Shown: piece by piece, positions 22,601-62,479 of the stretch
Numbering within the stretch: position 1 is the stretch's first letter
Layout of the letters: each line of letters opens with the position of its first letter
Assembly (NCBI RefSeq): GCF_001194135.2
Contig: NC_068985.1
Span: forward strand, 93,058,102 to 93,122,101
Direction: 5' to 3'
DNA length: 64,000 bases
Source of the DNA: Octopus bimaculoides
Lineage: Eukaryota
The notes under the pieces: generated by a model
The model's database searches: none
Told to the model about the DNA's origin: nothing
The model's input: only the letters and a program-made list of their open reading frames with translations
Position numbers and translations under genes: made by a program

Positions 22601-23554
22601 CAGCTAGTACTGATAATCGTTCACTAATAATCAAGCACCAATAATTCAAAAATACCTATAAAATTTTAAAAATTATTCTTGTTGCTATTTGCGTTTTAAA
22701 ACAATTTGAATGAATTGCTATCAACAGATTCATATTCTGTTCAGAAATAGTTTGCTTGAATGCCATACCCATGAACTAAGGGCTATCTGTTGATTCTACG
22801 ATGTATGTTAACATCATTAACCTATTCCAGTGTTCCAGACACAGTGAATACAGATGTGAAAATCTTAACTTAGTTCTTTGGATAATGATCTTATTAAAGA
22901 AGCCGTATTTTTTAGCCATAATTCAGCTAGTTCTGCTTGTAGAGTATACCTCAGCAGCCTTCACTTAATATAATTATTATCCAATTTACCTATGGTTTAC
23001 AAATCTCTTAGTCTGTTTTTCTCTATTACACTCTATTCACTGCTCTCTATACCCAGTCAGAGCAATAATCTCATCAGTTGTAAACAATCTGCCTCTTTGT
23101 GCTGTAAACAAACTATGATGAAAGTGTTTGGCTGTAGTAAGCTTCATGGTTGGAAAACTGGAGAGAAAAAAATCCTCGCAATGATGTTGTCTGTAAGCAG
23201 ACATTTGTAAACAGCCTAATTCTCCACTGACAACTTATCTTCATTTAGATTAACTGATCTAGTTTTAGTTTCATCTGATTTTAACCCAGGGATTTTGTTA
23301 TACAGTGTGAGTGGATTAAACACTGATGGTTAGAATAGATAATATAATCCTTGACAATTAACCTGGAAAAAAGAAAAATTGGATCTCCGACGTTGGAGTG
23401 GCTGTGTGGTAAGTAGCTTGCTTAGCAACCACATGGTCTCGGGTTCAGTCCCACTGCGTGGCACCTTGGGCAAGTGTCTTCTACTATACCCTCGGGCCGA
23501 TCAATGCCTTGTGAGTGGATTTGGTAGATGGAAACTGAAAGAAGCCCGTTGTAT

Positions 23555-23591
<37 letters not shown>

Positions 23592-26500
23592 NNNNNNNNN
23601 NNNNNNNNNNNNNNNNNNNNNNNNNNNNNNNNNNNNNNNNNNNNNNNNNNNNNNNNNNNNNNNNNNNNNNNNNNNNNNNNNNNNNNNNNNNNNNNNNNNN
23701 NNNNNNNNNNNNNNNNNNNNNNNNNNNNNNNNNNNNNNNNNNNNNNNNNNNNNNNNNNNNNNNNNNNNNNNNNNNNNNNNNNNNNNNNNNNNNNNNNNNN
23801 NNNNNNNNNNNNNNNNNNNNNNNNNNNNNNNNNNNNNNNNNNNNNNNNNNNNNNNNNNNNNNNNNNNNNNNNNNNNNNNNNNNNNNNNNNNNNNNNNNNN
23901 NNNNNNNNNNNNNNNNNNNNNNNNNNNNNNNNNNNNNNNNNNNNNNNNNNNNNNNNNNNNNNNNNNNNNNNNNNNNNNNNNNNNNNNNNNNNNNNNTACT
24001 CTAACAAAATCTACTACTCTTGGCTCACCATTTTTATATTTTCCCTTAATTTTATACCCATCTTGTCTCATTTCCTTCCATTGTATCAAACCCTACCCAA
24101 AACTCTATGATTAATACTTTTCTCAATCTATTTTTTATTTTCTCGGAAGTGTTCTGATATTTCCTTTAAGTAGAATGCATTCACCATTAGAATGAGCTAA
24201 AACAGCCTTGAATTTCTTATTTCTTTATTGCCCACAAGGGGCTAAACATAGAGTGGACAAACAAAGACAGATAAAGGGATTAAGTCGATTATATTGACCC
24301 CAGTATGTAACTGGTACTTAATTTATCGACCCCGAAAGGATGAAAGCAAAGTTGACCTCGGTGGAATTTGAAAACAGGACGTAACGGCAGACAAAATACC
24401 GCTAAGCATTTCGCCTGGCGTGCTAACGTTTCTGCCAGCTCACCACCTTGAGTTTCTTTCTCTCTTCGAGATAGACTTGGAATTTTACTCTATCATGAGC
24501 CCTAGGACTTATGGCTGGAACTTAACTTTGTTTCCATGGTGTAAAAGTGACTCAGGTTATATCCACCTAGCCCCTGAATCAAACGCTGTTTATCACACAG
24601 TTAACCACTCAGCTATTGCTGCCACTCCTTTACCAGTGGCTGGAATGGAGCAATGTGAGATGAAGTGTTTTTTGGCACAAGACCACAATAAACTGTCTGG
24701 TCTGGGAATTGAAACCAAGATCTTTATGATTGTGAATTCAGCAGCCTAACCACTAAGCCACATGCTCTTACTTTCAAGATAAAAACTAAAAGAAAACAAA
24801 ACAATTAACAAATTTACTGATAGCCTTAAGAATCTGTTTATAAATAAAGAAAATGATGGGTTAACATTTATGTCACAGTTGTAACTCGGTCATCAAATTG
24901 AAAGATGGTGTTATTTATCAATTGTGTCACTTGCATGGTTTTCGGTTCAGAATATATATTATATTCTGATTCAATGAAGTAAGAATATCATTGACATCCA
25001 AACTAGCCATTGTTTCTGAAAATATCAAATTATATTTCCTTTTGTCATTTCTTTAAAAGCCTTTGATTTTGAGTTTTGTTTTTTGTTTGTTGTTCGTTTT
25101 ATTTTGTTTTGCTTATTTGTATGACAGTAAAGTACTGGTGTTGAATAGCCAAAACTGAGAAACACAAGAATTCACCTCTGTCCATGGTACACAAACCTAA
25201 TCAATTTTACATCAACTGATATTTGCTCGTGCAGACCACTCAGACTTTGGACTTAGCTTATTCCTTTCTTTGCAAAGAACAGAGTTGTTTCTGTCTTATT
25301 TCACAGTTCTTTCTTTGCTCTTTCTTTAGTTTTATCATATTAGATATAGAAATCAAGTATATATATGTACAGAATGACAGATGCAAAGAATTCTTTCTTA
25401 ATTGAAATTTTCCTCTTAGTTGGAGAAAGAAAATGTAACCCCTGTGCCATTCACGAGTGAATGGCAAAAAAAAAAAAAGGTTAGTTTCAATAGATTAAGA
25501 ATTAATTTTAAAAACTTAAGAAAATATCTAAATCTTCTAAGTGGAGATGGTGACAGCAGCAGACATGTTCCAGCTTATTGAAGCTCACCAGTGTAGGTTA
25601 GATAACAATTCAGTTGATAAATAAACATAGGTTTTTATACTTTTAGAAAAAAGCGCTACAAATAATTTTTGCCTGCAGTAATTTGCAGGAGCGAATAAAC
25701 AAAATTTAGGTAATGAAAATAACTTAAATAAACCAGAAGTAGGGAGTGAATTGAATCAAATATGTATGGATCTACTCTGATAGTTCTTAATGAATTGAAA
25801 TTTCTTTCATAGCTGGAGAAAGGAAATGGAACCTTGTGGCAATAATTAGTGATTTGCAAAGAAAACTTTGAGGAAATTTCAATAAATTAAGAAAAAAGTT
25901 GATTTCTCATCTATGCTTCCCTAAAAAGGTCCAATAAGACCAAAATATGCCCAGTGTTGACACCATCTTTACTAACAAGGGCATGATTTTTCCTTAACCC
26001 CTTTGGCATTTAATCCAGCCATATCCATCCCAAATATTCTACCTGTTTTATGCTCAAACTGACAAGATCCAATACCCCACAATGTCATTCTAAAAATATA
26101 CAAACACACCATTAAAGTTTTGAAGCTACAAGATAATGTGTAATTAATTCAAAATATTGTGGATAAATAAGCAATACATTTGACAAAGAAACCTGAATGC
26201 TACAGGTTACAAGAACTCGAGTTTTTCAATTGCTTTTTAATTTATTAAAATAATGTTCTTATTTCTTTTTGTGCCACTAGCAAATGAATCCCATGTGTTT
26301 TTCGTTCTCTAACTAAAAGGAAAATTTTCAGTACATTTAGACATCATTAATTTACCTCAGTCTTGTACCATTGGCTCAAACCAGTAATTTCCATTATGTT
26401 AATTGTATACTTTGTTATGCTAATTGCTACCATGAAAATTTATTCATAACCATTTCTCTATATGAGGTGTTTAATAACAGAGTTGTAATGCCACTCTGGC

Positions 26501-29500: not shown

Positions 29501-32500
29501 CTTGAAGTGTGTCTAAAATTCAAAGCAGATATGTTAATTATAAAATAGATGTATTATTAGACTTTCATGTGTTGACAATTTAATTTATTAATCAAATTAT
29601 TATTGTTCTTCTTCTTTTCCTAAGTTAATTCTTTAGCATTACTTACGTGTCTTTGAAATTATTGCTTAAACTTATGCCTGTCAGGTTCTATATCCTCCTT
29701 TTAACACTTTCTGTTATGGTATCTTTTTGTCTTTCACAGAAATGAGATAGATAAATTATTGAGTGCAAACGCTAGCTTTAGAAATTATAGTTACAGATAT
29801 TCAAACAAACAATGCGTATGTGAAGTATTTGTAGTCATCATAATAGTACTAGGCATTAAAGTGGGGTGAGTGGTTGTGCTTCTGATATTTATGGAGCCTT
29901 CTTTCACACTCGTGTATAAAGTATAAGGTGTATGACACATGCAAGCCTGATGAAATGGATGTAGAATGAAATGAATGCTATATACAGGTTTTGTGTATGT
30001 GCACACATATGTACATCTGCAATCTGCATGTCTTTGAATGTATCTCCTGTAAATAATATATTTGTTTTAGGCATAGGAGTGGCTGTGTGGTAAGTAGCTT
30101 GCTTACGAACCACATGGTTCCGGGTTCAGTCCCACTGCATGACACCTTGGGCAAGTGTCTTCTACTATAGCCTCGGGCCGACCAAAGCTTGTGAGTGGAT
30201 TTGGTAGATGGAAACTGAAAGAAGCCCGTCATATGTATGTGTGTGTGTGTGTGTGTGTGTGTTTGTCCCCCAACATCGCTTGACAACCAATGCTGGTGTG
30301 TTTACGTTCCCTGTAACTTAGTGGTTCGGCAAAAGAGACCGATAGAGTAAGTACAAGGCTTACAAAGAATAAGTCCTGGGGTTGATTTGCTCGACTAAAG
30401 GCGGTGCTCCAGCATGGCCCCACAGTCAAATGACTGAAACAAGTAAAAGAATAAAAGAGTTTAATGCTGGTCTTTTAACTGGTGAAGTCTAAGTAAAGAA
30501 TTGCAACAACAACACCATCCAACTGTAAAAAACTGTTTCAATAAGTCTTTGTCCTCTCCATCCATGCCACCATGGAAAAGCAGAAGTAAAATCAGTTACA
30601 CACACACACACACACGGAAGCACACCATGTTCATACACATGCACAAAATGCTATATTCTCAATATACTTTATGTTTGCATTATATAAAACATGTATATTC
30701 TCTAAATTTAACTTTGTATGAGGGATGTTTCATAGCCATTTATTTGTTTCATTTGCAACTGTACATTTCTGAGCTCCTTCAACATTTCTAAACTTCCCCA
30801 GTCTTATTTTCTGTGAAAAACATTTTAGATGCATTTGTTGTTATTTCATTGGGCTGTTTTTCTTTTTTTTTAGATGAATATTATAAGAATTATGTCTGTT
30901 TTTCATTTGTTATCACCTTACTCCATATTATTTTTATTTATTTACATTAGACATCAGGTTATTTTCAGTAAATCAGAAGATAATGTAGCTGTAGTGTCTG
31001 GTTAGTTTGTTGCTCAAGTATGCTATCTGTTGGTGGAAGTCTTTTGTTAAATATTATTTTTTATTTTCTAGCTTCCATGAGCAATTTTCTCCTTCTATTG
31101 GGAGTTTTATATAAATAGAGTTGTGTTGTTAACTCACGTTTCTAGTTAGTTTACTTTTCTCTTCTGTATTCTTATGTTTTATAATGGCTCCTTGTTCTAG
31201 ATGCATGGTGTGCTGACAAAAAAGTGAGGTACCCATATGAATAATGTAACTGATTATGAAGTCTAGAAATTTCATACTTGCCTATAAATCTTTAAATTAC
31301 ATTAGTCATATGAAATTTATTCAGCAGTTGGTAGATTTGTAGTTGAAGAGATTTTTAAACTTGGATTTTTTTTAAATTTTATTATTTACAATTATTTTTT
31401 TTTCTTTTGGACATAATATGACCAGTAGTTTTTGACAGAATATAATACTTACAACCTTCTGTTTGATGAGTTCCTGATAACAGCTTCATGTATTATGTAA
31501 CCAAGATGTTTTCGGTTCATGTAATACATATATGTTGGTTTGGTTTTTTACTTAGTCTCTAATTAATGTATTCAATTGGTTTCTACTTTCTGTAGAGAAT
31601 GGTCTATAATAAATTTGCTTTGTATATCTGTCACTGACTGGCATTTTTGTTTCACTCACTTAGCTTTTTCCTTTTCTTTTTTTCTTGGTTTTGTAGTTTC
31701 TCTTTGTACAATAGAATCAAAAGTGCCTTATGAGTTGGTAGTTTATTGATAATATTGTTTTTGAATTTCTCGTTTTTCATCCATGTGGGCAGCATACACA
31801 CAAACACATGCGTCTATTTGTTGGTTTTGTAGTATAAAAGCTTATGAGAGTTTGGCACCCCCATGCATCCAGAGCGTGGCAACCTTATTGCATATCTAAC
31901 ATGTGGATGTGACATAGCTTTATATGCTTGTCATCATCTTCATCATCATTTTTTTAGTGTCCCCTTTTCTATGTTTTCATGGGTCAGACAGAGCTTATTG
32001 AAGCAGACTTTTTTTTTACAGCTTGGTGCCCTTCTTATTGTCAGCCTTCACTTGGTTTCCAAGTAAGGTTCCCCATGGCCAGACATGTTTCCATAGAATA
32101 TTGGATAGGAATGGTACTGCTTGTATAACAGTAACACCCACTTATAACTATCACAGAATGTTAAGATGTTGGAGATAAAAACATAGTCACACCTGTGTGC
32201 ACACACACCCACACACAAATATATGACAAACTTTTGGATGGAAGTTCATAAACCCATTACTCTATTACTATGTACGTTTCCACATTGGAGTTAAATCAAA
32301 CACTCAATGCTCCACCCTCACAGAGCATGTACACTGAATTCAGAACAAAGAAATTCATGACCATTCTCTTTTACTTCTCTTATATTACTGATTCTACTCT
32401 CTCTTTTCCTCTTCCTATCCACACACGCCCACTTGCACTGATCTAAATACAAAGTGAATCACTACATACATCCACCCTCCCATTTTGTTTATGTATATAT

Positions 32501-32807: not shown

Positions 32808-33404
32808 GGCACTCCGTCGCTTATAACGTCGAGGGTTCCAGTTGATTCGATCAACGGAACAGCCTGCTCATGAAATTAACGTGCAAGTGGCTGAGCAATC
32901 CACAGACACGTGTACCCTTAATGTAGTTATTGGGGATATTCAGCGTGACACAATGTGACAAGGCTGGCCCTTTGAAATACAGGTACAACAGGAAGAAAGA
33001 GTGAGAGAAAGTTGTGGTGGAAGAGTACAGCAGAGTTTGCCACCATCCCCTGCCGGAGCCTTGTGGAGCTTTAGGTGTTTTCCCGGTCTGGGAATCAAAA
33101 CCGTGATCCTATGACCACGAGTCTGCTGCCCTAACCACTGGGCCATTGCACCTCCACTAAATATATATATATATATATATATATATACTTTTCTACTCTA
33201 GGCACAAGGCCCAAAATTTTTGGGGAAGGGGACAGTTGATTAGATCAAGCCCAGTACACAACTGGTACTTAATTTATCAACCCCGAAAGGATGTAAGGCA
33301 AAGTCAACTACAGTGGAATTTGACCTGAGAACATACAGACAGACAAAATACCACTAAGCATTTTGCCCGGCGTGCTAACGTTTCTGCCAACTTGCCTTAT
33401 ATAA

Positions 33405-33441
<37 letters not shown>

Positions 33442-45900: not shown

Positions 45901-48900
45901 TTTTTACTGGCTTAAATTTTTTTTAAGTATGAGTAAATATGCTGAAATCTTCACTTTTCTACAGTAAAATTGTATCACAATGGGTCTATCTTTACTTGTA
46001 ACCATTACTTGTATGTAGTAACAATAGATGTCAAATATAGAAATAGGATGGTTGACATAAAGGTTAAAAAAAATATGGCAAAAAATATTTTGTTGTCGCC
46101 TTTTCTGATTCTCTTAGAGGCATTAAAATTTTAAAATCAATTCTTTGTGTGTATTTGTATGTGATGGTTATGAATAATATTAATTTAAAAACAGATTCCC
46201 ATTTAAAATCATTAAAGTGCTATGAAATAGTGTCCAGCTATTTTCTTTTGCTGATTTTGAAATCTGTAAAAAAAAAAATTACAATATGAAACCACATGAG
46301 AAATAACCCTTGAAACTTGGAAAGCTGTGACTTTTAGATATGCTGTCTGCTTTTCTACTCAAGAAGTGTTGTTGGAGACAGAAACTGAATAATCTTAATT
46401 TGTAATTGTAATACCATGATTTAGAATTTGATTATTGAAATACTATCATACTTGGCCATATATATAGTACAGTGTCTGACAAATATGGTTCATAATAACA
46501 TTTCTTGTTTTTACATTATTTACATTTGACAGATATTTGTCCTCATCTTGTTTGTTGTTAACGCAACGTTTTGGCTGATATATCCTCCGGCATATAGCAT
46601 GGTGGTTAAGAGCACGGGCTACTAACCCCAAGATTCTGAGTCCAATCCCAGGCAGTGACCTGAATAATAATAATAATAATGATGAAAAATACCTTGAGAA
46701 TGAGAACCCAGGTTCGAAATTTTCCCAAGACACCTGATGAAGGCTGGAGGGTGTATCAACCGAAACATTGTGTTAACAACGAAAAAGATGAGGACAAATA
46801 TCTGTCAAATGTAAATAATGTAAATAATGTACATAATTCCTCATCTCTTAAATATAGAACTGTATTTCTTGTTTTTATTAAATTTTTTTTTGTTTTTTTT
46901 TTTAAAGAAGCAAATTAGAATTATGTCTCTTTTAGTTTTTGCCATTTCAGGATGAAGATATGAAGCGGGTTTTTTTACCTCCTCATGATTATTCTGATAG
47001 ACCATATACACCATGTAAACAAGATTCACCTCATGTAGAACCTAAAAGAATATATATGGACTCACCAAATCGGCAAATTGCATATTTAGATGATTCAGAC
47101 ACAAGATTACCAAATGAAGGTGAGTAAAAGGAAACTTTATCTCTCTCTCCAATTCCATTGACTAAAGAATTATTTTTGATCAACAAAGAATTAATTTTAT
47201 TACAAAACACTATCTGTCCTTCTCAAAATGTGCAGATTTAAGACAGCTTGTATTTTATTTAAGAATTTATCTAAGCAATATTTTTATAAAACTTGCAGAT
47301 AGCAGATGTTAAACCAATAGACAATTCCCAATTTTGACCTGTAGAAATGGAATATTCAATATGAGTCTGTTGTTTGATCTTACTGATCAAATGGCATAAT
47401 GACTACTCCTGGCATTCACTGAGATGGGGAAAGGAACAGATAGCCTTAGTTAAATGGCTGAAAATGTCTCAGGCAAATTGGACTTCATTGGAAAGGGAAC
47501 TTCCAGAGTAGATGAAGGCATTTGTGTTCTTTAACTTTCATTATCATATGTAATAAAATACATGTTCCTTAAATTAATTTTGAAAATAATCAAAATTTGT
47601 TGTCAATTTAGTAAGATAACTAAATGTTTGTTAATCTGATGTAACAAATTTAACCAAAGGTTCTAAGATAAAATTATGATGGAAGTCTATAATTTATATA
47701 TAAAATGGATGATTTTACATTACAGAACTAGAAACGATCTCAGGCTTTTTGGCACCAAAATGGTTAATTGTTTGGTTATTATCAATATGAATTATAAGTA
47801 AAGATTATTTGACAACATAGCATGGCAGTCTTGGTTTAGGACTGCCATGTTATGATGGCAAATAATCTTTACTCCAAAAGAATTTTTGCTGAATATCTCT
47901 CTTTGTGAGATTTACAAACAGTAATTTTCTAATGAATTATAAGGTTGAATAATCATTGGATTGACATGTCTTCAGTATTTTCAATATTAATGATGTTCCT
48001 GAAGAAACAATCAAGATGATGTTTGTAAAGAATTCTTCACTAAGATCCAAAAGTCTGTTCATGATCAAGTTAGCTTCTTCCATTTTATAACATTGTTTAT
48101 GCTAGAAATTGTACATTATTTACATTTGACAGATATTTGTCCTCATCTTATTTGTTGTTCACACAATGTTTCGGCTGATATACCCTCCAGCCTTCATCAG
48201 GTGTCTTGCAGAAATTTCAAACCGCGGTTCTCATTCCTAAAGTATTTTTTGTTGATATTATTATTCAGGTCACTGCTTGGAATCGAACTCGGAATCTTGG
48301 GGTTAGTAGCCCAAGCTCTTAACCACTATGCCATGTGCCCATATTATAATTCATGTTGATAATAATCAATCAATCAATTAACCATTTTGGTACCAAAAAG
48401 CCTGAGATCATTTCTATTTCTATTATGTACCATTTTATATTTAAATCATAGACTTCCATCATAAAAAAAAAACCTTAGGAATGAGAACCCAGGTTCAAAA
48501 TTTCCACAAGACACCTGATGAAGGCTGGAGGATATTTCAGCTGAAATCTTGTATTAACAACAAACAAGATGAGGACAAATATCTGTCAAATGTAAATAAT
48601 TCCTCATCTCTTAAATATAGAATTGTATGCTAGAAATTGTTTCAAATTTCATTCATCACGTATAGATTGAAGATAATACTCATTAAAATCTTAATTTTGT
48701 TCAAACAGAAGTCTAAAAACATCTTTACTATTGGGCTATCAGATATTTTTCCTTTTTATATTTCACTTGGCATTCCATCATTATAGATAATATTTATTTA
48801 GATTTCAAAAATGATGAACTAAAGTTGTAGAAGAATAGAGCTACAAAAGCATCCATAAAATAATCCAATAAAAATTTTTTAGTGTTAATTCAAATAACAT

Positions 48901-51900
48901 TGGAAGGGATTAAAATAAATGAGAGAAAAATGAACAAATTTATCTAAAAACCCAATATTTAGGAGCTTGGCTAATATGCAGTGACATATTCTACATTTTG
49001 AGAAATCATGATGTGTAATTTTCAGATTGAGAAATATATCATTGAGAAGTCTTAAAACATGTGTGGATTTTTTTTTACCCTCCATTGATATAATGCAATG
49101 TTTGACAGAAAGAGCAGCAATATTGAAAAATTGCAAACAGGACTCATCATTTGTGTGCAATATGACTGACTTAATATAAAGGATATTTAGAAATCAAATG
49201 AAATGTATATTTTTTTAGCGCTACAGCAGAAACTGTGGTTGGACATTAAGTGCTTAGTAAGCTGACCCCTGTCCAGAGGGTGGTAGGGTTTGGTCCTTAA
49301 TGAAGCAAATAGTTCTTCAAAAAAGTTTTAGGATAGTGTCACATTATTTACATTTGACTGATATTTGTCCTCATCTTGTTTGTTGTTAACACATTTCAGC
49401 TGATATACCCTCCAGCCTTCATCAGGTGTTTTGGGAAAATTTCGAACCTGGGTTCTCATTCCTAAGGTATTTTTTGGTGTTATTATTATTATTGTTATTA
49501 TTCAGGTCACTGCCTGAAATTGAACTCGTGGGCATATGGCATAGTGGTTAAGAGCGTGAGCTACTAACCCCAAGATTCCGAGTTCAATTCCAGGCTGTGA
49601 CCTGAATAATAATAATAATAACATCAAAAAATACCTTAGGAATGAGAACCCAGGTTCAAAATTTCCCCAAGACACCTGATGAAGGCTGGAGGGTATATCA
49701 GCCAAAATGATGTGTTAACAACAAACAAGATGAGGACAAATATCCGTCAAATGTAAATAATGTACATAATTCTTCCTCTCTTAAATATAGAACTGTAGTG
49801 TCACAACTTACAAATTTGAGGGATGGAATTGTTTGAAATTGAAGTATTATTAAATGTTACTTTAAAAAAATAATAATACTCTTGTTTTTGTTCTGCTCTC
49901 ATATACTTTCTCATTATCTAGTTTAAAGTAGGTCTCCATTTATGTTATAAATGTTGACTGGAATTTTAAATTTTACATATCTTTATGACTATTCAATTTT
50001 CTCTGATAGATTTATATATGACACCTAAAAAAAAGACAGAAACCTTTGAGCCTAATCATTATGGGGTTATTCGAGGCAAGACGCCACCAGGAAATATATA
50101 TGAAGATACAAATTGGTCTCGTCAAGAACAAAATAGTCGAATGCGAGTAAGTAATGGACTGTACAGGGGACCTTTTTCTTCTTTCAGCACCTTATTCTAA
50201 GATTATTGTTTTGTTTTTTGGGGGGTTTTTTTCCCAGATATTCATTCACTTTTTATGATTTCTTTTCATTTACTTTGACTATGAGTTTTAAAGCTACTGT
50301 GAAAGTGATAATCCTTGTGAAATATAGCGCTGCGTTTTACTGATTAATAATATATAATTATTGAATTGTAATTAAGTGTAGCTAGCTCCAAGATCTATAA
50401 CTGCCGAAAAGAAATAGTTGTATCTGCTAGAATAAAAGTTTTCTAATGTAATTTTATTACTGCTAGGTGAAATATTTTAACTGTTGTCTTTTGTGGTTTA
50501 GTACCATTTTATTACTCTGGAATATAGTCTGCTTACAAAATTTACTTTTTTATTCCAAACTTCACTTTGCTTGAATAGTTTTAGGAATCTGTTTTCTTAA
50601 TGAAATTTTAATTAGATTAAGTAATATAAGAATAAAAATAGTTGTCATTTAAATTTGAAATACAACATGATTTATAGAATACACAAACTTGAAGATGGTG
50701 TAGTTTGTTTCATTAACCTTTTTAAGTTGTTTGAAATTGATATTATTTTTCTGATATAGTCTTGTTAAAATTCTTCACTTTTAATGACTTCTGAAAACGA
50801 AAAGGATAAAAATGAGTTTCTTATACTTTTGAAGTATGGAAATGAGCCACACTATATTAGAAATGTAAATTTATATAAAAAGAATTTTTTTAAAGAATAA
50901 CCTAACGACCACTTTCATGTCAATTCCAAACACAATTTCAATTATCTATATATGAATAGTGATTTTCATTCCCCACTTTTTTTGTTTTATAAGAGCATTT
51001 TTAATTTCTTAATTGGCGACAATATCTTAACTTCTAATTTTGCTTTTTATTTTTTCTTTCTTTGTCAGGAAAATTTAATTATAATGTTGGTATTTCTGAT
51101 GGCTCATTTTCTTTCTTTCCTATGTAGTAAATGGCAGTTGTACCAGTCATTACAGCAATACATTAATTTCTATTGTTCTGTCAGTGTTGTGCCTTTACAC
51201 GTGTTTTATAAAACTCTTTCACTGAAAGGTTCTTTTTTAAGCTTCAATAGTAATTTTTAAATAACAATTAAATTTCTTAAATATATCCTAATTATACTCA
51301 AAAAGTTAGTAGGAGACCTAAGGGTAAGATAGTTATTTAGAACGAGAGCTATTTTGCAGATGGTGCTTGACATAAGCTTCTAAATTCATCTTTCCATTCA
51401 TATTAAATTGTTTCTTTTTTGGTGGTGGCGGGGTTTCACATTTAAAAGCCAGTTATAGTCTTTAATGAAGAAATAGTTGAAGCATAGAGCAAAATATTTA
51501 TTTTTATACAAATTACCTATAAAGTTGTAGTGAAGTAAAATAATATCCGTTGTGTTAAAATTGCTTTGCTATGAATATACAGTATTTTTTTTTATTCTTA
51601 TAAGAAAAGGATCTTGGTAGTTGGTGTCTGCATTAACATTAGAGATCCCAGCATTTGCATTTCTGTCAACAGATCTGCAAGATTATGTTCCTACTTTAAC
51701 TTTGGTTAAGTAGAAATAAAGTATCAATCATTTGTGCCTTACATTACTTTATTTTCTTCCTTCATTTATCATTTTACTGTTTAATAGGAGAGTATTGTAG
51801 TTCGCTTGAAGCATTGTGTATTGTTTGTAAAGAATAAAAAAATTTGAATGGTACAACAATGCACTATAATACAAAAACTGGACTATATACCTGTTGTAAT

Positions 51901-60078: not shown

Positions 60079-62040
60079 TGTTAATCAGTTTCATGATTTT
60101 GTGATTTAACTTTGTGTCATATGTTTCCATCGTTATTTGCATTCAGATGTGATAGGTTATTCTAATACATTGTTATTGATAATTTAATCCGCGATTTGCA
60201 ACAGAAACTCGGAAAATCTTCACAGTTTTGTCAGTTTACCTGTTATTACCTGATTTGGCTTTTTTTAATAAGCTGAATGCTGTGTTATTTTTGTAGTTTT
60301 TTTGTTCTACCTAGACCAGAATAATTGTGCTTTGGGGGGGGTTATATATAATGAACAGTTATAACCTAATCATCAGAGAGCTAAACCATTAGTGAATTGA
60401 ATTATTCCCTACTAGTTTAAGATACATAGTATTATTCTTTGATAGTATATAAATACAATAATGAATTTTATATATATATATATATATTCGGAGAATTTTA
60501 TTGCTATTATATATACAAGGATATTTATTTCTAAAGTAATTTTCTCTTGAAGTATTTAGTGAGTTAGCTTTCACATTCCCTGCCCCAAGCGGCAGTCCAG
60601 GAGTCAAGTAAGCCCTTGCTATGCTTCTGTTTTTGTTGTGGTGGTTCTTGTTTTTGTTGTTGCTGCAACTATAGAGTTTAATCTAGACCCTGCCCCCTAG
60701 TACTTACTAATAACTGGATTGGTGTCCAAAAATATTTTTTGACTAAGTTATTTTTTTTTAAGTGAGACCTATCACAAGTTAGTTTAATGAAATTATTGCT
60801 TCAGTGATTCCTTACACCTCACAAAAAAGGGGGTCAGAATTCATGAAGAAATCACTCTTATTTAGCTGCAGCAACAACAATCAGTTCTCCTAAGATTCCC
60901 TGATGCTTATTTTGTGTGTACCTGTATCTGTGTGTGTAAATATGTGTTTCTCCACCTTTTTTTTTTTTTTACCCATCCTATTTATTACATTCTGGCTGCA
61001 ATTAAGATATTTCAGTTGATACTTAATGTAAATTTGAAATTGTTTTTTTGAAATTCAATTAAAATTTGATATGAGCCATTTTAAAGCTTTCGTTATCTGC
61101 AGCCAGTTGTATAAACTATATACATGGTTAGGTTCATTCTCCTCCTATTACTGTTTTGCTTAATTAATACTTGGGTGCTGTTATTTGTTTTTAATTTAAA
61201 TTGCTATTGGAAGTAGCTTTTTTGTTTTCTTTTTGTTCCCCATTTTATTTAATATGGTTTTCTTTGTTTGTTCTGCTTACCTTATAGTAATTCTCTCATC
61301 TTTGCAGATCTGTGATTCCGTAATCTGTTGTCATTTTTTTGTTTAATCCCAACTTCCCTTCCCCAACCCCTTCACTTTATGTTCTTAAACTGTTGTTAAA
61401 TAATTGTTTTCTTCAATTCTCTCTCTCTCTCTCTCTCTCACTTTAAATAATGCCAAACTATTGTTTATATTAGCTTGCTTCCAGCTTTCCCATTGTTCCC
61501 TTGTTAACAAATTCTTGTCAGCTGATCACAATTAATTTACATGTGCATTCATGCTTCTTTATTCTTCAATTCGTTATGTTGTTTTCTCATTAATGATAGT
61601 GAGAGCTATTATCATATGGTAAAAGTGACTATATTTTTACTGTAGTTTCCATTAACAAGTGAAACTATGAAAAAATATATGACCTTATATGCATACAATC
61701 ATGCATATGTATTATAAATACATTGCACACACATATGTATATATATATATATATATAATTATATATATATAAATCTTCATTGAAGCCATGTGTCATTTCA
61801 TGTTTCTGCATGTGATTACTTCTTTAGATTCACATTCAATATATAAGATAAAAACCAAGCATGCCAGCAAAAAGTCCATACACATCCTGTTAGCTGAACA
61901 AGGCCCCAGATTGTTGACCCTTAGCAAACAGTGCCTTTCAGCAAAAAAAATAAATAAATGAAAACCTGACTACAAAGGAAAAACTTCCAGATTACAATAA
62001 AAGTAATCCATAAAATAATTTAAAAATAAATATAAAACTA

Positions 62041-62414
62041 GGCATAGGAGTGGCTGTGTGGTAAGTAGCTTGCTTACCAACTATATGGTTTTGGGTTTAG
62101 TCCCACTGCGTGACACCTTGGGCAAGTGTCCTCTACTATAGCCTCGGGCCGACCAAAGCCTTGTGAGTGGATTTGGTAGATGGAAACTGAAAGAAGCCCG
62201 TTGTATATATATGTATATTTGTGTGTCAGTGTTTGTCCCCCCAACATCGCTTGACAACCGATGCTGGTGTGTTTACATCCCCTTTAAATTAGCGACCGAT
62301 AAAATAAGTACTAGGCTTACAAAGAATAAGTCCTGGGGTAGATTTGCTCAACTAAAGGTGGTGCTCCAGCATGGCCACAGTCAAATAACTGAAACAAGTA
62401 AAACAGTGAAGAGT
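62041..62414 (+). mobile_element. Full-length SINE family 1
   Basis: Colinear with 30070-30460. Confidence 0.85.
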
Positions 62415-62479
62415 ATATGAAATAACAATAAATTAATATGAAGTGGGAGGTTGTTAGATAACACAGTGTATTCCAAGTC

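Follow-up and report, generated by a model that had tools for sequence, protein, structure and literature searches.

A tRNA-headed SINE of Octopus with a Penelope-type 3′ end, a hammerhead-like segment and a probable dependence on Penelope-like elements

A 64,000-nucleotide stretch of the Octopus bimaculoides genome (contig NC_068985.1, positions 93,058,102 to 93,122,101 of the forward strand; hereafter the window, in whose coordinates all positions are given) contains a short interspersed element (SINE) that joins a tRNA-like head to a 3′ end resembling the one seen in Penelope-like elements (PLEs), including a minimal hammerhead ribozyme motif. SINEs are textbook parasites of long interspersed elements (LINEs). 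The element described here is probably a ~268-bp tRNA-derived SINE family of Octopus that has a PLE-type 3′ end and depends on PLEs for its spread, as had been proposed in an earlier reading of the same DNA (the original prediction). This assignment draws on the anatomy of the copies, on the form of their insertions and on a comparison with genuine PLE loci.

A BLAST search of the window with one copy and then with the consensus as query identified six copies at 46512-49797 and no others in the 64 kb; the interval first proposed, 46589-49797, started at the second copy and omitted the first, which begins 77 bp earlier. The six copies represent three insertion events (A, B and C), each of which is a head-to-head inverted pair (3/3). 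Insertion A consists of an inverted, 5′-truncated arm on the minus strand (c1, 46512-46591, consensus positions 156-235), which begins within loop II of the hammerhead and is without the 33-nt tail, and a direct full-length arm on the plus strand (c2, 46589-46864) with its head at 46589-46660, (AAT)n and linker at 46661-46688, body at 46689-46728, hammerhead motif at 46729-46774, post-hammerhead segment at 46775-46831 and tail extension at 46832-46864. The inverted arm of insertion B (c3, 48110-48340, minus strand, consensus 1-237) has a complete 5′ end, no tail extension, a head with intact A and B boxes at 48268-48340 and the best-preserved hammerhead motif at 48160-48205; its direct partner (c4, 48465-48627, plus strand, consensus 97-268) is 5′-truncated, with the hammerhead motif at 48510-48555 and the tail extension at 48596-48627. 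Insertion C combines an inverted arm that is 5′-truncated in box B and has no tail extension (c5, 49341-49528, minus strand, consensus 50-234; hammerhead motif at 49388-49430) with a direct full-length arm (c6, 49530-49797, plus strand) whose head, with both boxes intact, lies at 49530-49602, followed by the hammerhead motif at 49671-49716 and the tail extension at 49765-49797. The consensus of the six-copy alignment is 268 bp long and non-coding, and it comprises, in order, a 73-nt tRNA-like head, an (AAT)n and A-rich linker, a body of 40 nt, the segment resembling a hammerhead, a 48-nt stretch that is very strongly conserved among the copies and a 33-nt terminus. The copies differ from this consensus at 2-7% of non-CpG sites, and none of them carries a poly(A) or microsatellite SINE tail.

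A direct repeat flanks each pair rather than each arm, with lengths of 14 bp in A (ATTTCTTGTTTTTA; 46500-46513 and 46864-46877, the last bases being ambiguous with the element end), 15 bp in B (TATGCTAGAAATTGT; 48098-48112 and 48626-48640, end bases ambiguous) and 10 bp in C (TAGTGTCACA; 49334-49343 and 49796-49805, end bases ambiguous). The conserved 33-nt tail, CATAATTCCTCATCTCTTAAATATAGAACTGTA, is confined to the direct arms (c2, c4 and c6), and all three inverted arms terminate at consensus position ~235-237. One arm in each pair is 5′-truncated, at a point that differs from pair to pair (consensus 156 in A, 97 in B and 50 in C). The ends of the element are located at +1 of the tRNA-like sequence and at 53 and 86 nt beyond the predicted hammerhead cleavage site. 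Short assemblies of a sister octopus, ~85% identical to the window in these introns, cover two of the three sites and present both of them empty: contigs L007-L009 join position 49341 to 49797 with a single AGTGTCA at the junction (insertion C), and contigs L010/L011 join 46527 to 46864 with a single T-rich target copy (insertion A). The sister octopus lacks pair A and pair C in their entirety, and each is a single insertion event. Divergence between the arms of a pair (4.9-11.8%) approximates the sum of the distances of the two arms from the consensus, which fits arms that were identical at the time of insertion. No such arrangement is seen in the other repeat families of the window.

Two alternative origins of the pairing were considered and rejected. 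Independent insertion of the two arms is incompatible with duplications that surround the pair and with pairs that are missing as units in the sister species, and segmental duplication of one pair was discarded because the three duplications and their flanks differ. A separate observation concerns the junction of insertion B, where 124 bp of filler (48341-48464) constitute an 84% inverted copy of 47674-47797; this source lies ~310 bp upstream of the insertion site, is also present in the sister species and has only these two copies in the window. The filler may be a template-switch product formed during integration, or it may be an unrelated repeat.

The hammerhead motif is complete in the consensus only, after restoration of two CpG sites, each of which is still intact in one or two copies and appears in the others as its TG or CA decay products. 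The restored sequence, gacac-CUGAUGA-a-GGCUGG-agggtata-UCAGCC-GAAA-CG-UU^guguu, satisfies a strict minimal-hammerhead descriptor, which requires a helix I no shorter than 4 bp, CUGANGA with or without one additional nucleotide, a perfectly paired helix II, GAAA, a palindrome, U and finally H. This strict descriptor gave no match in 300 random 64-kb sequences searched on both strands (38 Mb); the relaxed descriptor has a false-positive rate of 0 to 0.5 per Mb. The consensus agrees with the hammerhead core at C3-U4-G5-A6-N7-G8-A9, G12-A13-A14, A15.1-U16.1 and H17 (CUGAUGA...GAAA-CG-U-U^G), and the core recognized in the original prediction therefore stands, with amendments. Helix II, first described as a 5-bp stem, is 6 bp (GGCUGG/UCAGCC, including one G-U pair), closed by G10.1-C11.1 and capped by an 8-nt loop. 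Helix I (GACAC/GUGUU) is 5 bp with one G-U pair and is open, as in type I hammerheads; both helices appear in the minimum free energy fold of the 61-nt region. Helix III and loop 3 are absent, and positions 15.2-16.2 of the CpG-restored consensus are palindromic (A-CG-U). The AACGTT that had been reported as intact at 46565-46570 in place of stem III is confirmed there, in c1, and its CpG has decayed to TG or CA in the other copies. An unpaired extra A follows A9 in every copy that reaches it. The string CTGATGAAGGCTGGAGGGTATATCAGCCGAAAC is exact in c3 and occurs with at most two mismatches in c2, c5 and c6, compared to zero occurrences expected from shuffles. Preservation is uneven: CUGAUGA is undamaged in the five copies that reach it (c1 does not), and GAAA is intact in c2-c5, with G12 changed to A in c1 and c6. 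Additional lesions include G16.2 to A in c2 and c3, a stem II mismatch in c2, C11.1 to T in c4 and c5 and a 3-nt deletion in c5. Damage to every copy had been anticipated, and the six copies of the window, each with mutations predicted to be inactivating, appear to be dead relics. A relaxed hammerhead scan revealed no other hammerhead-bearing repeat in the window, and a search for the hammerhead string in the full text of papers gave no match.

The design of this motif is that of PLE hammerheads. Metazoan PLE minimal hammerheads have no helix III, are palindromic at 15.2-16.2, possess an unpaired nucleotide between A9 and 10.1 and combine a G10.1-C11.1 pair with a long helix II and a short helix I (PMC4209133); all of these hallmarks are present in the SINE consensus. 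The extra A after A9, which had been entered as a caveat in the original prediction, is thus a hallmark of PLE hammerheads instead. Minimal hammerheads have also been described in pairs, ~100-700 bp apart and on opposite strands (PMC4209133), and PLE insertions contain an inverted 5′-truncated copy adjoining the 5′ end, along with a 30-40-bp tail that is often one-sided (Craig et al., PMC8557442). To obtain genuine PLEs we used a synthetic Penelope/Poseidon-type reverse transcriptase-endonuclease (RT-EN) consensus, employed only as bait, which matched 4735 PLE-like proteins; precomputed RVT_1 and GIY-YIG domains were present on the matches. Two intact-looking loci with open reading frames (ORFs) for RT and GIY-YIG, L012 (ERZ25068511) and L013 (ERZ21788760), were used as controls. 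In L012, which includes an inverted copy, the descriptor finds exactly two hammerheads, each located 54 nt past the stop of an RT-EN ORF, with the sequence gcc-CUGAAGA-a-GACCG-gaguaaca-CGGUC-GAAA-cg-UC^ggc. The L013 hammerhead is uga-CUGAAGA-a-GGUC-cacg-GACC-GAAA-cg-UC^uca, and the inverted/tandem copies at this locus are 99% identical. Both minimal hammerheads take the form CUGAAGA-a-...-GAAACGUC and share the extra A and the GAAA-CG-U-H of the SINE. L012, the better resolved of the two loci, reproduces the inverted pair, the one duplication and the one-sided tail in closely similar dimensions: the post-cleavage sequence common to the arms is 49 nt in L012 and 53 nt in the octopus SINE, the tail on the direct arm alone is 31 and 33 nt, and the target-site duplication around the pair is 10 bp and 10-15 bp, respectively. 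The three inverted pairs, each with a one-sided tail and inside one duplication, bear the published PLE signature, and together with the L012 control they support the PLE-dependent SINE that had been predicted.

The 5′ part of the element has the features of an internal promoter for RNA polymerase III (Pol III). Box A (TGGCATAGTGG, consensus positions 8-18) matches TRGCNNAGTGG exactly, box B (aGTTCGATTCC, GAGTTCGATTCC, positions 52-62) agrees with the box B consensus GGTTCGANNCC at 10 of 11 positions, and the spacing between the boxes is canonical for a tRNA. The combined A and B box pattern occurs in c3 and c6 and in none of 300 random 64-kb sequences, in agreement with the tRNA-like head reported initially. 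The three full-length copies begin at the same base, which is +1 of the tRNA-like sequence. Judged from sequence, the element would be transcribed by Pol III; its consensus has no T4 run, so that such a transcript would terminate in flanking DNA. Compared with eleven tRNAs, the head is identical at 44-52 of 73 positions (60-71%) and no single parent stands out. A second string resembling a tRNA T-arm, CCCAGGTTCGAAATTTCCCC, is found at consensus ~118-140 (e.g., 49647-49669), just 5′ of hammerhead helix I; it may be the leftover of a second tRNA-like unit or a piece of the captured PLE segment.

Several observations weigh against a PLE-dependent SINE that carries a hammerhead. The hammerhead as described is the presumed ancestral state, read from a six-copy consensus with two CpG sites restored, and none of the six individual copies passes even the relaxed descriptor. 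The hammerhead families of Rfam 15 gave no match at the gathering score in the whole window or at E ≤ 10 in 3.5 kb and 241 bp. Rfam hammerhead models presumably include helix III, so this silence would be expected; the lack of a match lowers library support and leaves the structural match intact. For the head, ARAGORN detected no tRNA in the window, and the Rfam tRNA model had no match in the same searches, even at E ≤ 10 on 241 bp. The likeness of the SINE tail to PLEs is one of design and geometry, and its homology to the end of an octopus PLE is putative; none of the 120 PLE-like matches listed was an Octopus-named protein, and tblastn of the listed PLE-like proteins against the window gave no match. 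The direct tandem repeat (pseudo-long terminal repeat, pLTR) of PLEs is missing from all three insertion events; according to the literature it is frequent and not obligatory. With respect to catalysis, the published in vitro cleavage of PLE minimal hammerheads is poor (PMC4209133). For a double-hammerhead dimer the predicted energy is -24.3 kcal/mol, whereas two monomers score -27.2 and an alternative dimer -31.4; on nearest-neighbour energies, a double-hammerhead dimer formed through ACGU is possible and not favoured. Finally, cleavage at the predicted site, midway along the unit, would part the promoter half from the tail, and a role in processing is not obvious.

The alternative that survives best, although we consider it unlikely, is that the element is a short non-autonomous PLE derivative, such as a truncated pLTR or a retrozyme-like unit, with an incidental tRNA-like 5′ end and with transcription by read-through or by Pol II; its spread might proceed via a hammerhead-cut circular RNA. 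Animal retrozymes provide a precedent for hammerhead-bearing non-autonomous PLE derivatives, and the negative results with ARAGORN and the Rfam tRNA model, along with a ~65-70% identity to the eleven tRNAs that singles out no parent, are what this explanation would lead one to see. It does not account for three full-length copies that begin at the tRNA-like +1, nor for an exact box A and a 10/11 box B at canonical spacing. Moreover, the copies occur singly and dispersed, not in ~300-bp tandem arrays, and their ends lie away from the hammerhead cleavage site, contrary to what is predicted for an RNA that has been cut and ligated.

The tails of most SINEs are LINE tails. This norm would be followed by an ordinary tRNA SINE that depends on LINEs and contains a hammerhead-like string by chance, with pairs that arose by twin priming or as neighbouring insertions, and RTE, CR1, Dong-R4 and L1-Tx1 LINEs are active in octopus (PMC13282606). 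The absence of an Rfam hammerhead match and of a PLE partner among the PLE-like proteins listed also speaks for such an origin. We nevertheless regard it as highly unlikely. The strict motif is absent from 38 Mb of random sequence, and the SINE shows additional PLE-typical features that a chance match would not need. Twin priming would invert another segment of one RNA, closer to its 5′ end, whereas both arms share the 3′ region here, with an overlap of 80-185 bp. In addition, the duplications surround the pairs, pairs A and C are absent as units in the sister species, and the tail is neither poly(A) nor a microsatellite but a 33-nt extension on one side, like that of the PLE at L012. The remaining proposal takes each pair for a foldback DNA transposon or miniature inverted-repeat transposable element (MITE) with terminal inverted repeats. 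It has in its favour the long terminal inverted repeats and flanking duplication of each unit and a real MITE-like hairpin nearby (47797-47873), and it is barely credible in view of duplications of 10, 14 and 15 bp where DNA transposon families give a fixed length, arm truncations that vary (156, 97 and 50) in the pattern of 5′ truncation by reverse transcription, a 33-nt tail at one end only and a Pol III-type head within the unit.

A PLE-dependent SINE would be mobilized as follows. Pol III would transcribe a master copy from the internal promoter, running through the element into flanking DNA, and the reverse transcriptase and GIY-YIG endonuclease of a PLE would recognize the PLE-like 3′ module in trans. 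The endonuclease would nick the two strands with a stagger of 10-15 bp, and both nicked strands would prime reverse transcription on the SINE RNA. The outcome would be a head-to-head inverted pair, often with one 5′-truncated arm, with the tail on one arm and one flanking duplication. The last ~127 nt of the SINE have the layout of the 3′ end of a PLE of the endonuclease-positive type (minimal hammerhead, about 53 nt and 33-nt tail), and the hammerhead would have arrived with the captured PLE end. What the sequences show is how the element is built and inserted, its duplications, its empty sites in the sister species and its agreement with real PLE loci; from these we infer Pol III transcription, PLE enzymes as the mobilizer and any catalysis. 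Both arms reach at least 53 nt beyond the predicted cleavage site, which indicates that the copied templates were uncleaved. The hammerhead is more likely to be part of the structure recognized by the PLE enzyme, or a passenger, than the maker of the element ends; any cleavage would be expected to occur as a dimer through the ACGU palindrome. Within PLEs themselves the role of the hammerhead is unknown (PMC7761336).

The kind of element described here has precedents in Sm-alpha and in retrozymes, and the novelty claimed for it in the original prediction was overstated. tRNA-derived SINE-like elements with hammerheads have been known in Schistosoma since 1998 (Ferbeyre et al. 1998; Laha et al. 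2000), and the heads of Sm-alpha are described as tRNA-Gln-like (PMC2770079, PMC6765202, PMC8490949). The octopus SINE shares with Sm-alpha/Sj-alpha a short non-coding retroposon format, a tRNA-derived Pol III-type 5′ part, a type-I hammerhead and a high copy number. The Sm-alpha hammerhead is canonical, has loop-loop contacts and a helix III that is short, cleaves well and matches the Rfam model Hammerhead_1, and Sm-alpha is often found in tandem arrays; compared with these descriptions, the octopus element has no helix III and no Rfam match, is dispersed and exhibits the inverted-pair and tail signature of PLEs. Animal retrozymes are likewise non-coding, hammerhead-bearing and ~170-400 nt long, and are proposed to be PLE-dependent derivatives (Cervera & de la Pena 2020, PMC7229834; Li, Clavereau & Pollet 2026, bioRxiv 10.64898/2026.07.22.740005). 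Retrozymes are tandem repeats that give rise to circular RNAs cut by hammerheads at both ends, have no tRNA head and are reported to be depleted from introns, whereas the octopus SINE occurs as dispersed units and inverted pairs, has a Pol III head and ends off the cleavage site, and is intronic. The octopus copies are accordingly not the ~300-bp tandem repeats, delimited by cleavage sites, that define retrozymes.

Relative to the minimal hammerheads of PLE pLTRs, the octopus motif has the same CUGANGA...GAAA core, extra nucleotide after A9, G10.1-C11.1 pair, long helix II, short helix I, missing helix III and palindromic ACGU, and it is likewise found in opposite-strand pairs a few hundred base pairs apart. 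It differs in being preceded, within a unit of 268 bp, by a tRNA-like Pol III head rather than by an RT-EN ORF. PLE minimal hammerheads have been treated by Cervera and de la Pena (2014, PMC4209133) and reportedly also by Lunse, Weinberg and Breaker (2017). Minimal hammerheads that are dispersed and solitary have so far been taken for truncated PLEs (PMC4209133, PMC7761336). As in LINE-tailed tRNA SINEs, the octopus element is built of head, body and tail, the tail presumably being copied from the partner and recognized by its reverse transcriptase; unlike them, it has a putative PLE (GIY-YIG) partner, no A-rich or simple-repeat 3′ end and an inverted duplicate with a one-sided tail. By description, it resembles OK, OR1 and OR2 (Ohshima & Okada 1994), which are tRNA-derived, similar in size and from the same genus. 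One of OR1 and OR2 is a CORE-SINE, PMC4758252 and PMC4824008 disagreeing as to which; no CORE-like domain was evident by eye in the octopus SINE, with no dedicated test applied. Should the family be OK, OR1 or OR2, the element itself would be old and only the hammerhead and PLE reading would be new. In our literature search, no paper connected the SINEs of cephalopods with hammerheads or with PLEs.

The SINE copies fall in the introns flanking two exons of a nephrin-like gene (46951-47118 and 50011-50148, plus strand), the translations of which are 100% identical to residues 1136-1237 of the nephrin-like protein XP_036359051.1 of Octopus sinensis. The three insertion events are packed into 3.3 kb (46512-49797), with none in the remaining ~60 kb of the window; the chance of such clustering is ~1% under uniform placement. 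PLEs reportedly insert into or near existing copies (PMC6765202). The direct arms of all three insertions lie on the sense strand of the gene. The intron between the two exons measures ~70 bp in a more distant cephalopod (loci L001-L006, with exons of about 76-78% identity to those of the window) versus 2.9 kb in the window (47119-50010), and insertions B and C supply ~1.3 kb of the octopus intron. The paired arms form 80-185-bp intronic inverted repeats with predicted hairpin energies of -144 to -294 kcal/mol. Six-frame translation of the window (A+T = 67%, longest ORF ≤ 243 aa) yielded no GIY-YIG or YxDD motif, and by these motif searches and tblastn with the listed PLE-like proteins the window holds neither a reverse transcriptase nor a GIY-YIG endonuclease, not even as a remnant.

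A search of a protein collection for SINE-derived ORFs returned two matches only, both from O. bimaculoides. One of them, P0022 (annotated as dystrobrevin beta isoform X1), starts with MPMGIWHSG-EGWRVYQPKCCVNNKQDEDKYPS, which corresponds to the SINE head spliced to the hammerhead/tail frame; on the evidence of this peptide, a SINE copy appears to be annotated as the coding first exon. The other, P0021, is a 51-aa uncharacterized protein that consists of SINE sequence throughout. The presence of SINE-derived peptides in two proteins indicates that the SINE family exists in O. bimaculoides. The dystrobrevin gene spans 132 kb and the nephrin-like gene 215 kb. Exact patterns of the SINE tail or hammerhead gave no matches in metagenome, prokaryotic-genome and viral contigs.

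If the assignment is correct, the element represents a clear partnership between a SINE and PLEs, in which a tRNA head, a PLE 3′ end and the PLE insertion signature coincide, and it would account for some of the "orphan" minimal hammerheads that have been reported, dispersed and in their thousands, from animal genomes. A 268-bp substrate would also ease the study of the poorly understood integration of PLEs, with its double priming, its tail on one side and the part played by the ribozyme. In the 2026 repeat annotation of O. vulgaris, SINEs account for 11.6% of the genome, the recently active SINE families are nearly all "unclassified" and 30 Penelope families are recently active (PMC13282606). 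Among 19 species surveyed, octopus ranks first both in the measured fraction of loci able to form double-stranded RNA and in hyper-editing (PMC5625713), and each insertion of the SINE adds an 80-185-bp inverted repeat to a transcribed intron, which suggests a possible link to RNA editing. The broadest extension, that PLEs rather than LINEs may drive much of the large, mostly "unclassified" SINE load of octopus and that the inverted duplicates could be a main source of the unusually abundant long intronic double-stranded RNA feeding ADAR hyper-editing, is a doubtful conjecture.

Other features of the window were also noted. An assembly gap of 405 N occurs at ~23590-23995, with a (TA)n-type simple repeat at its border. 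At least one second SINE-like repeat family, with the common antisense peptide FFQFPSTKSTHK, is represented at 23395-23566, 30068-30463, 33188-33427, 62039-62432 and other positions; its copies lack a hammerhead motif and do not form inverted pairs, and the sister-species contig L010 ends inside one of them. A 77-bp near-perfect hairpin at 47797-47873, detected as a self inverted repeat and accompanied by weak mir-8-like and psbA-like Rfam noise, is contained in a ~130-bp segment (47800-47931) that is missing from L010 and looks like a small lineage-specific MITE-like insertion.

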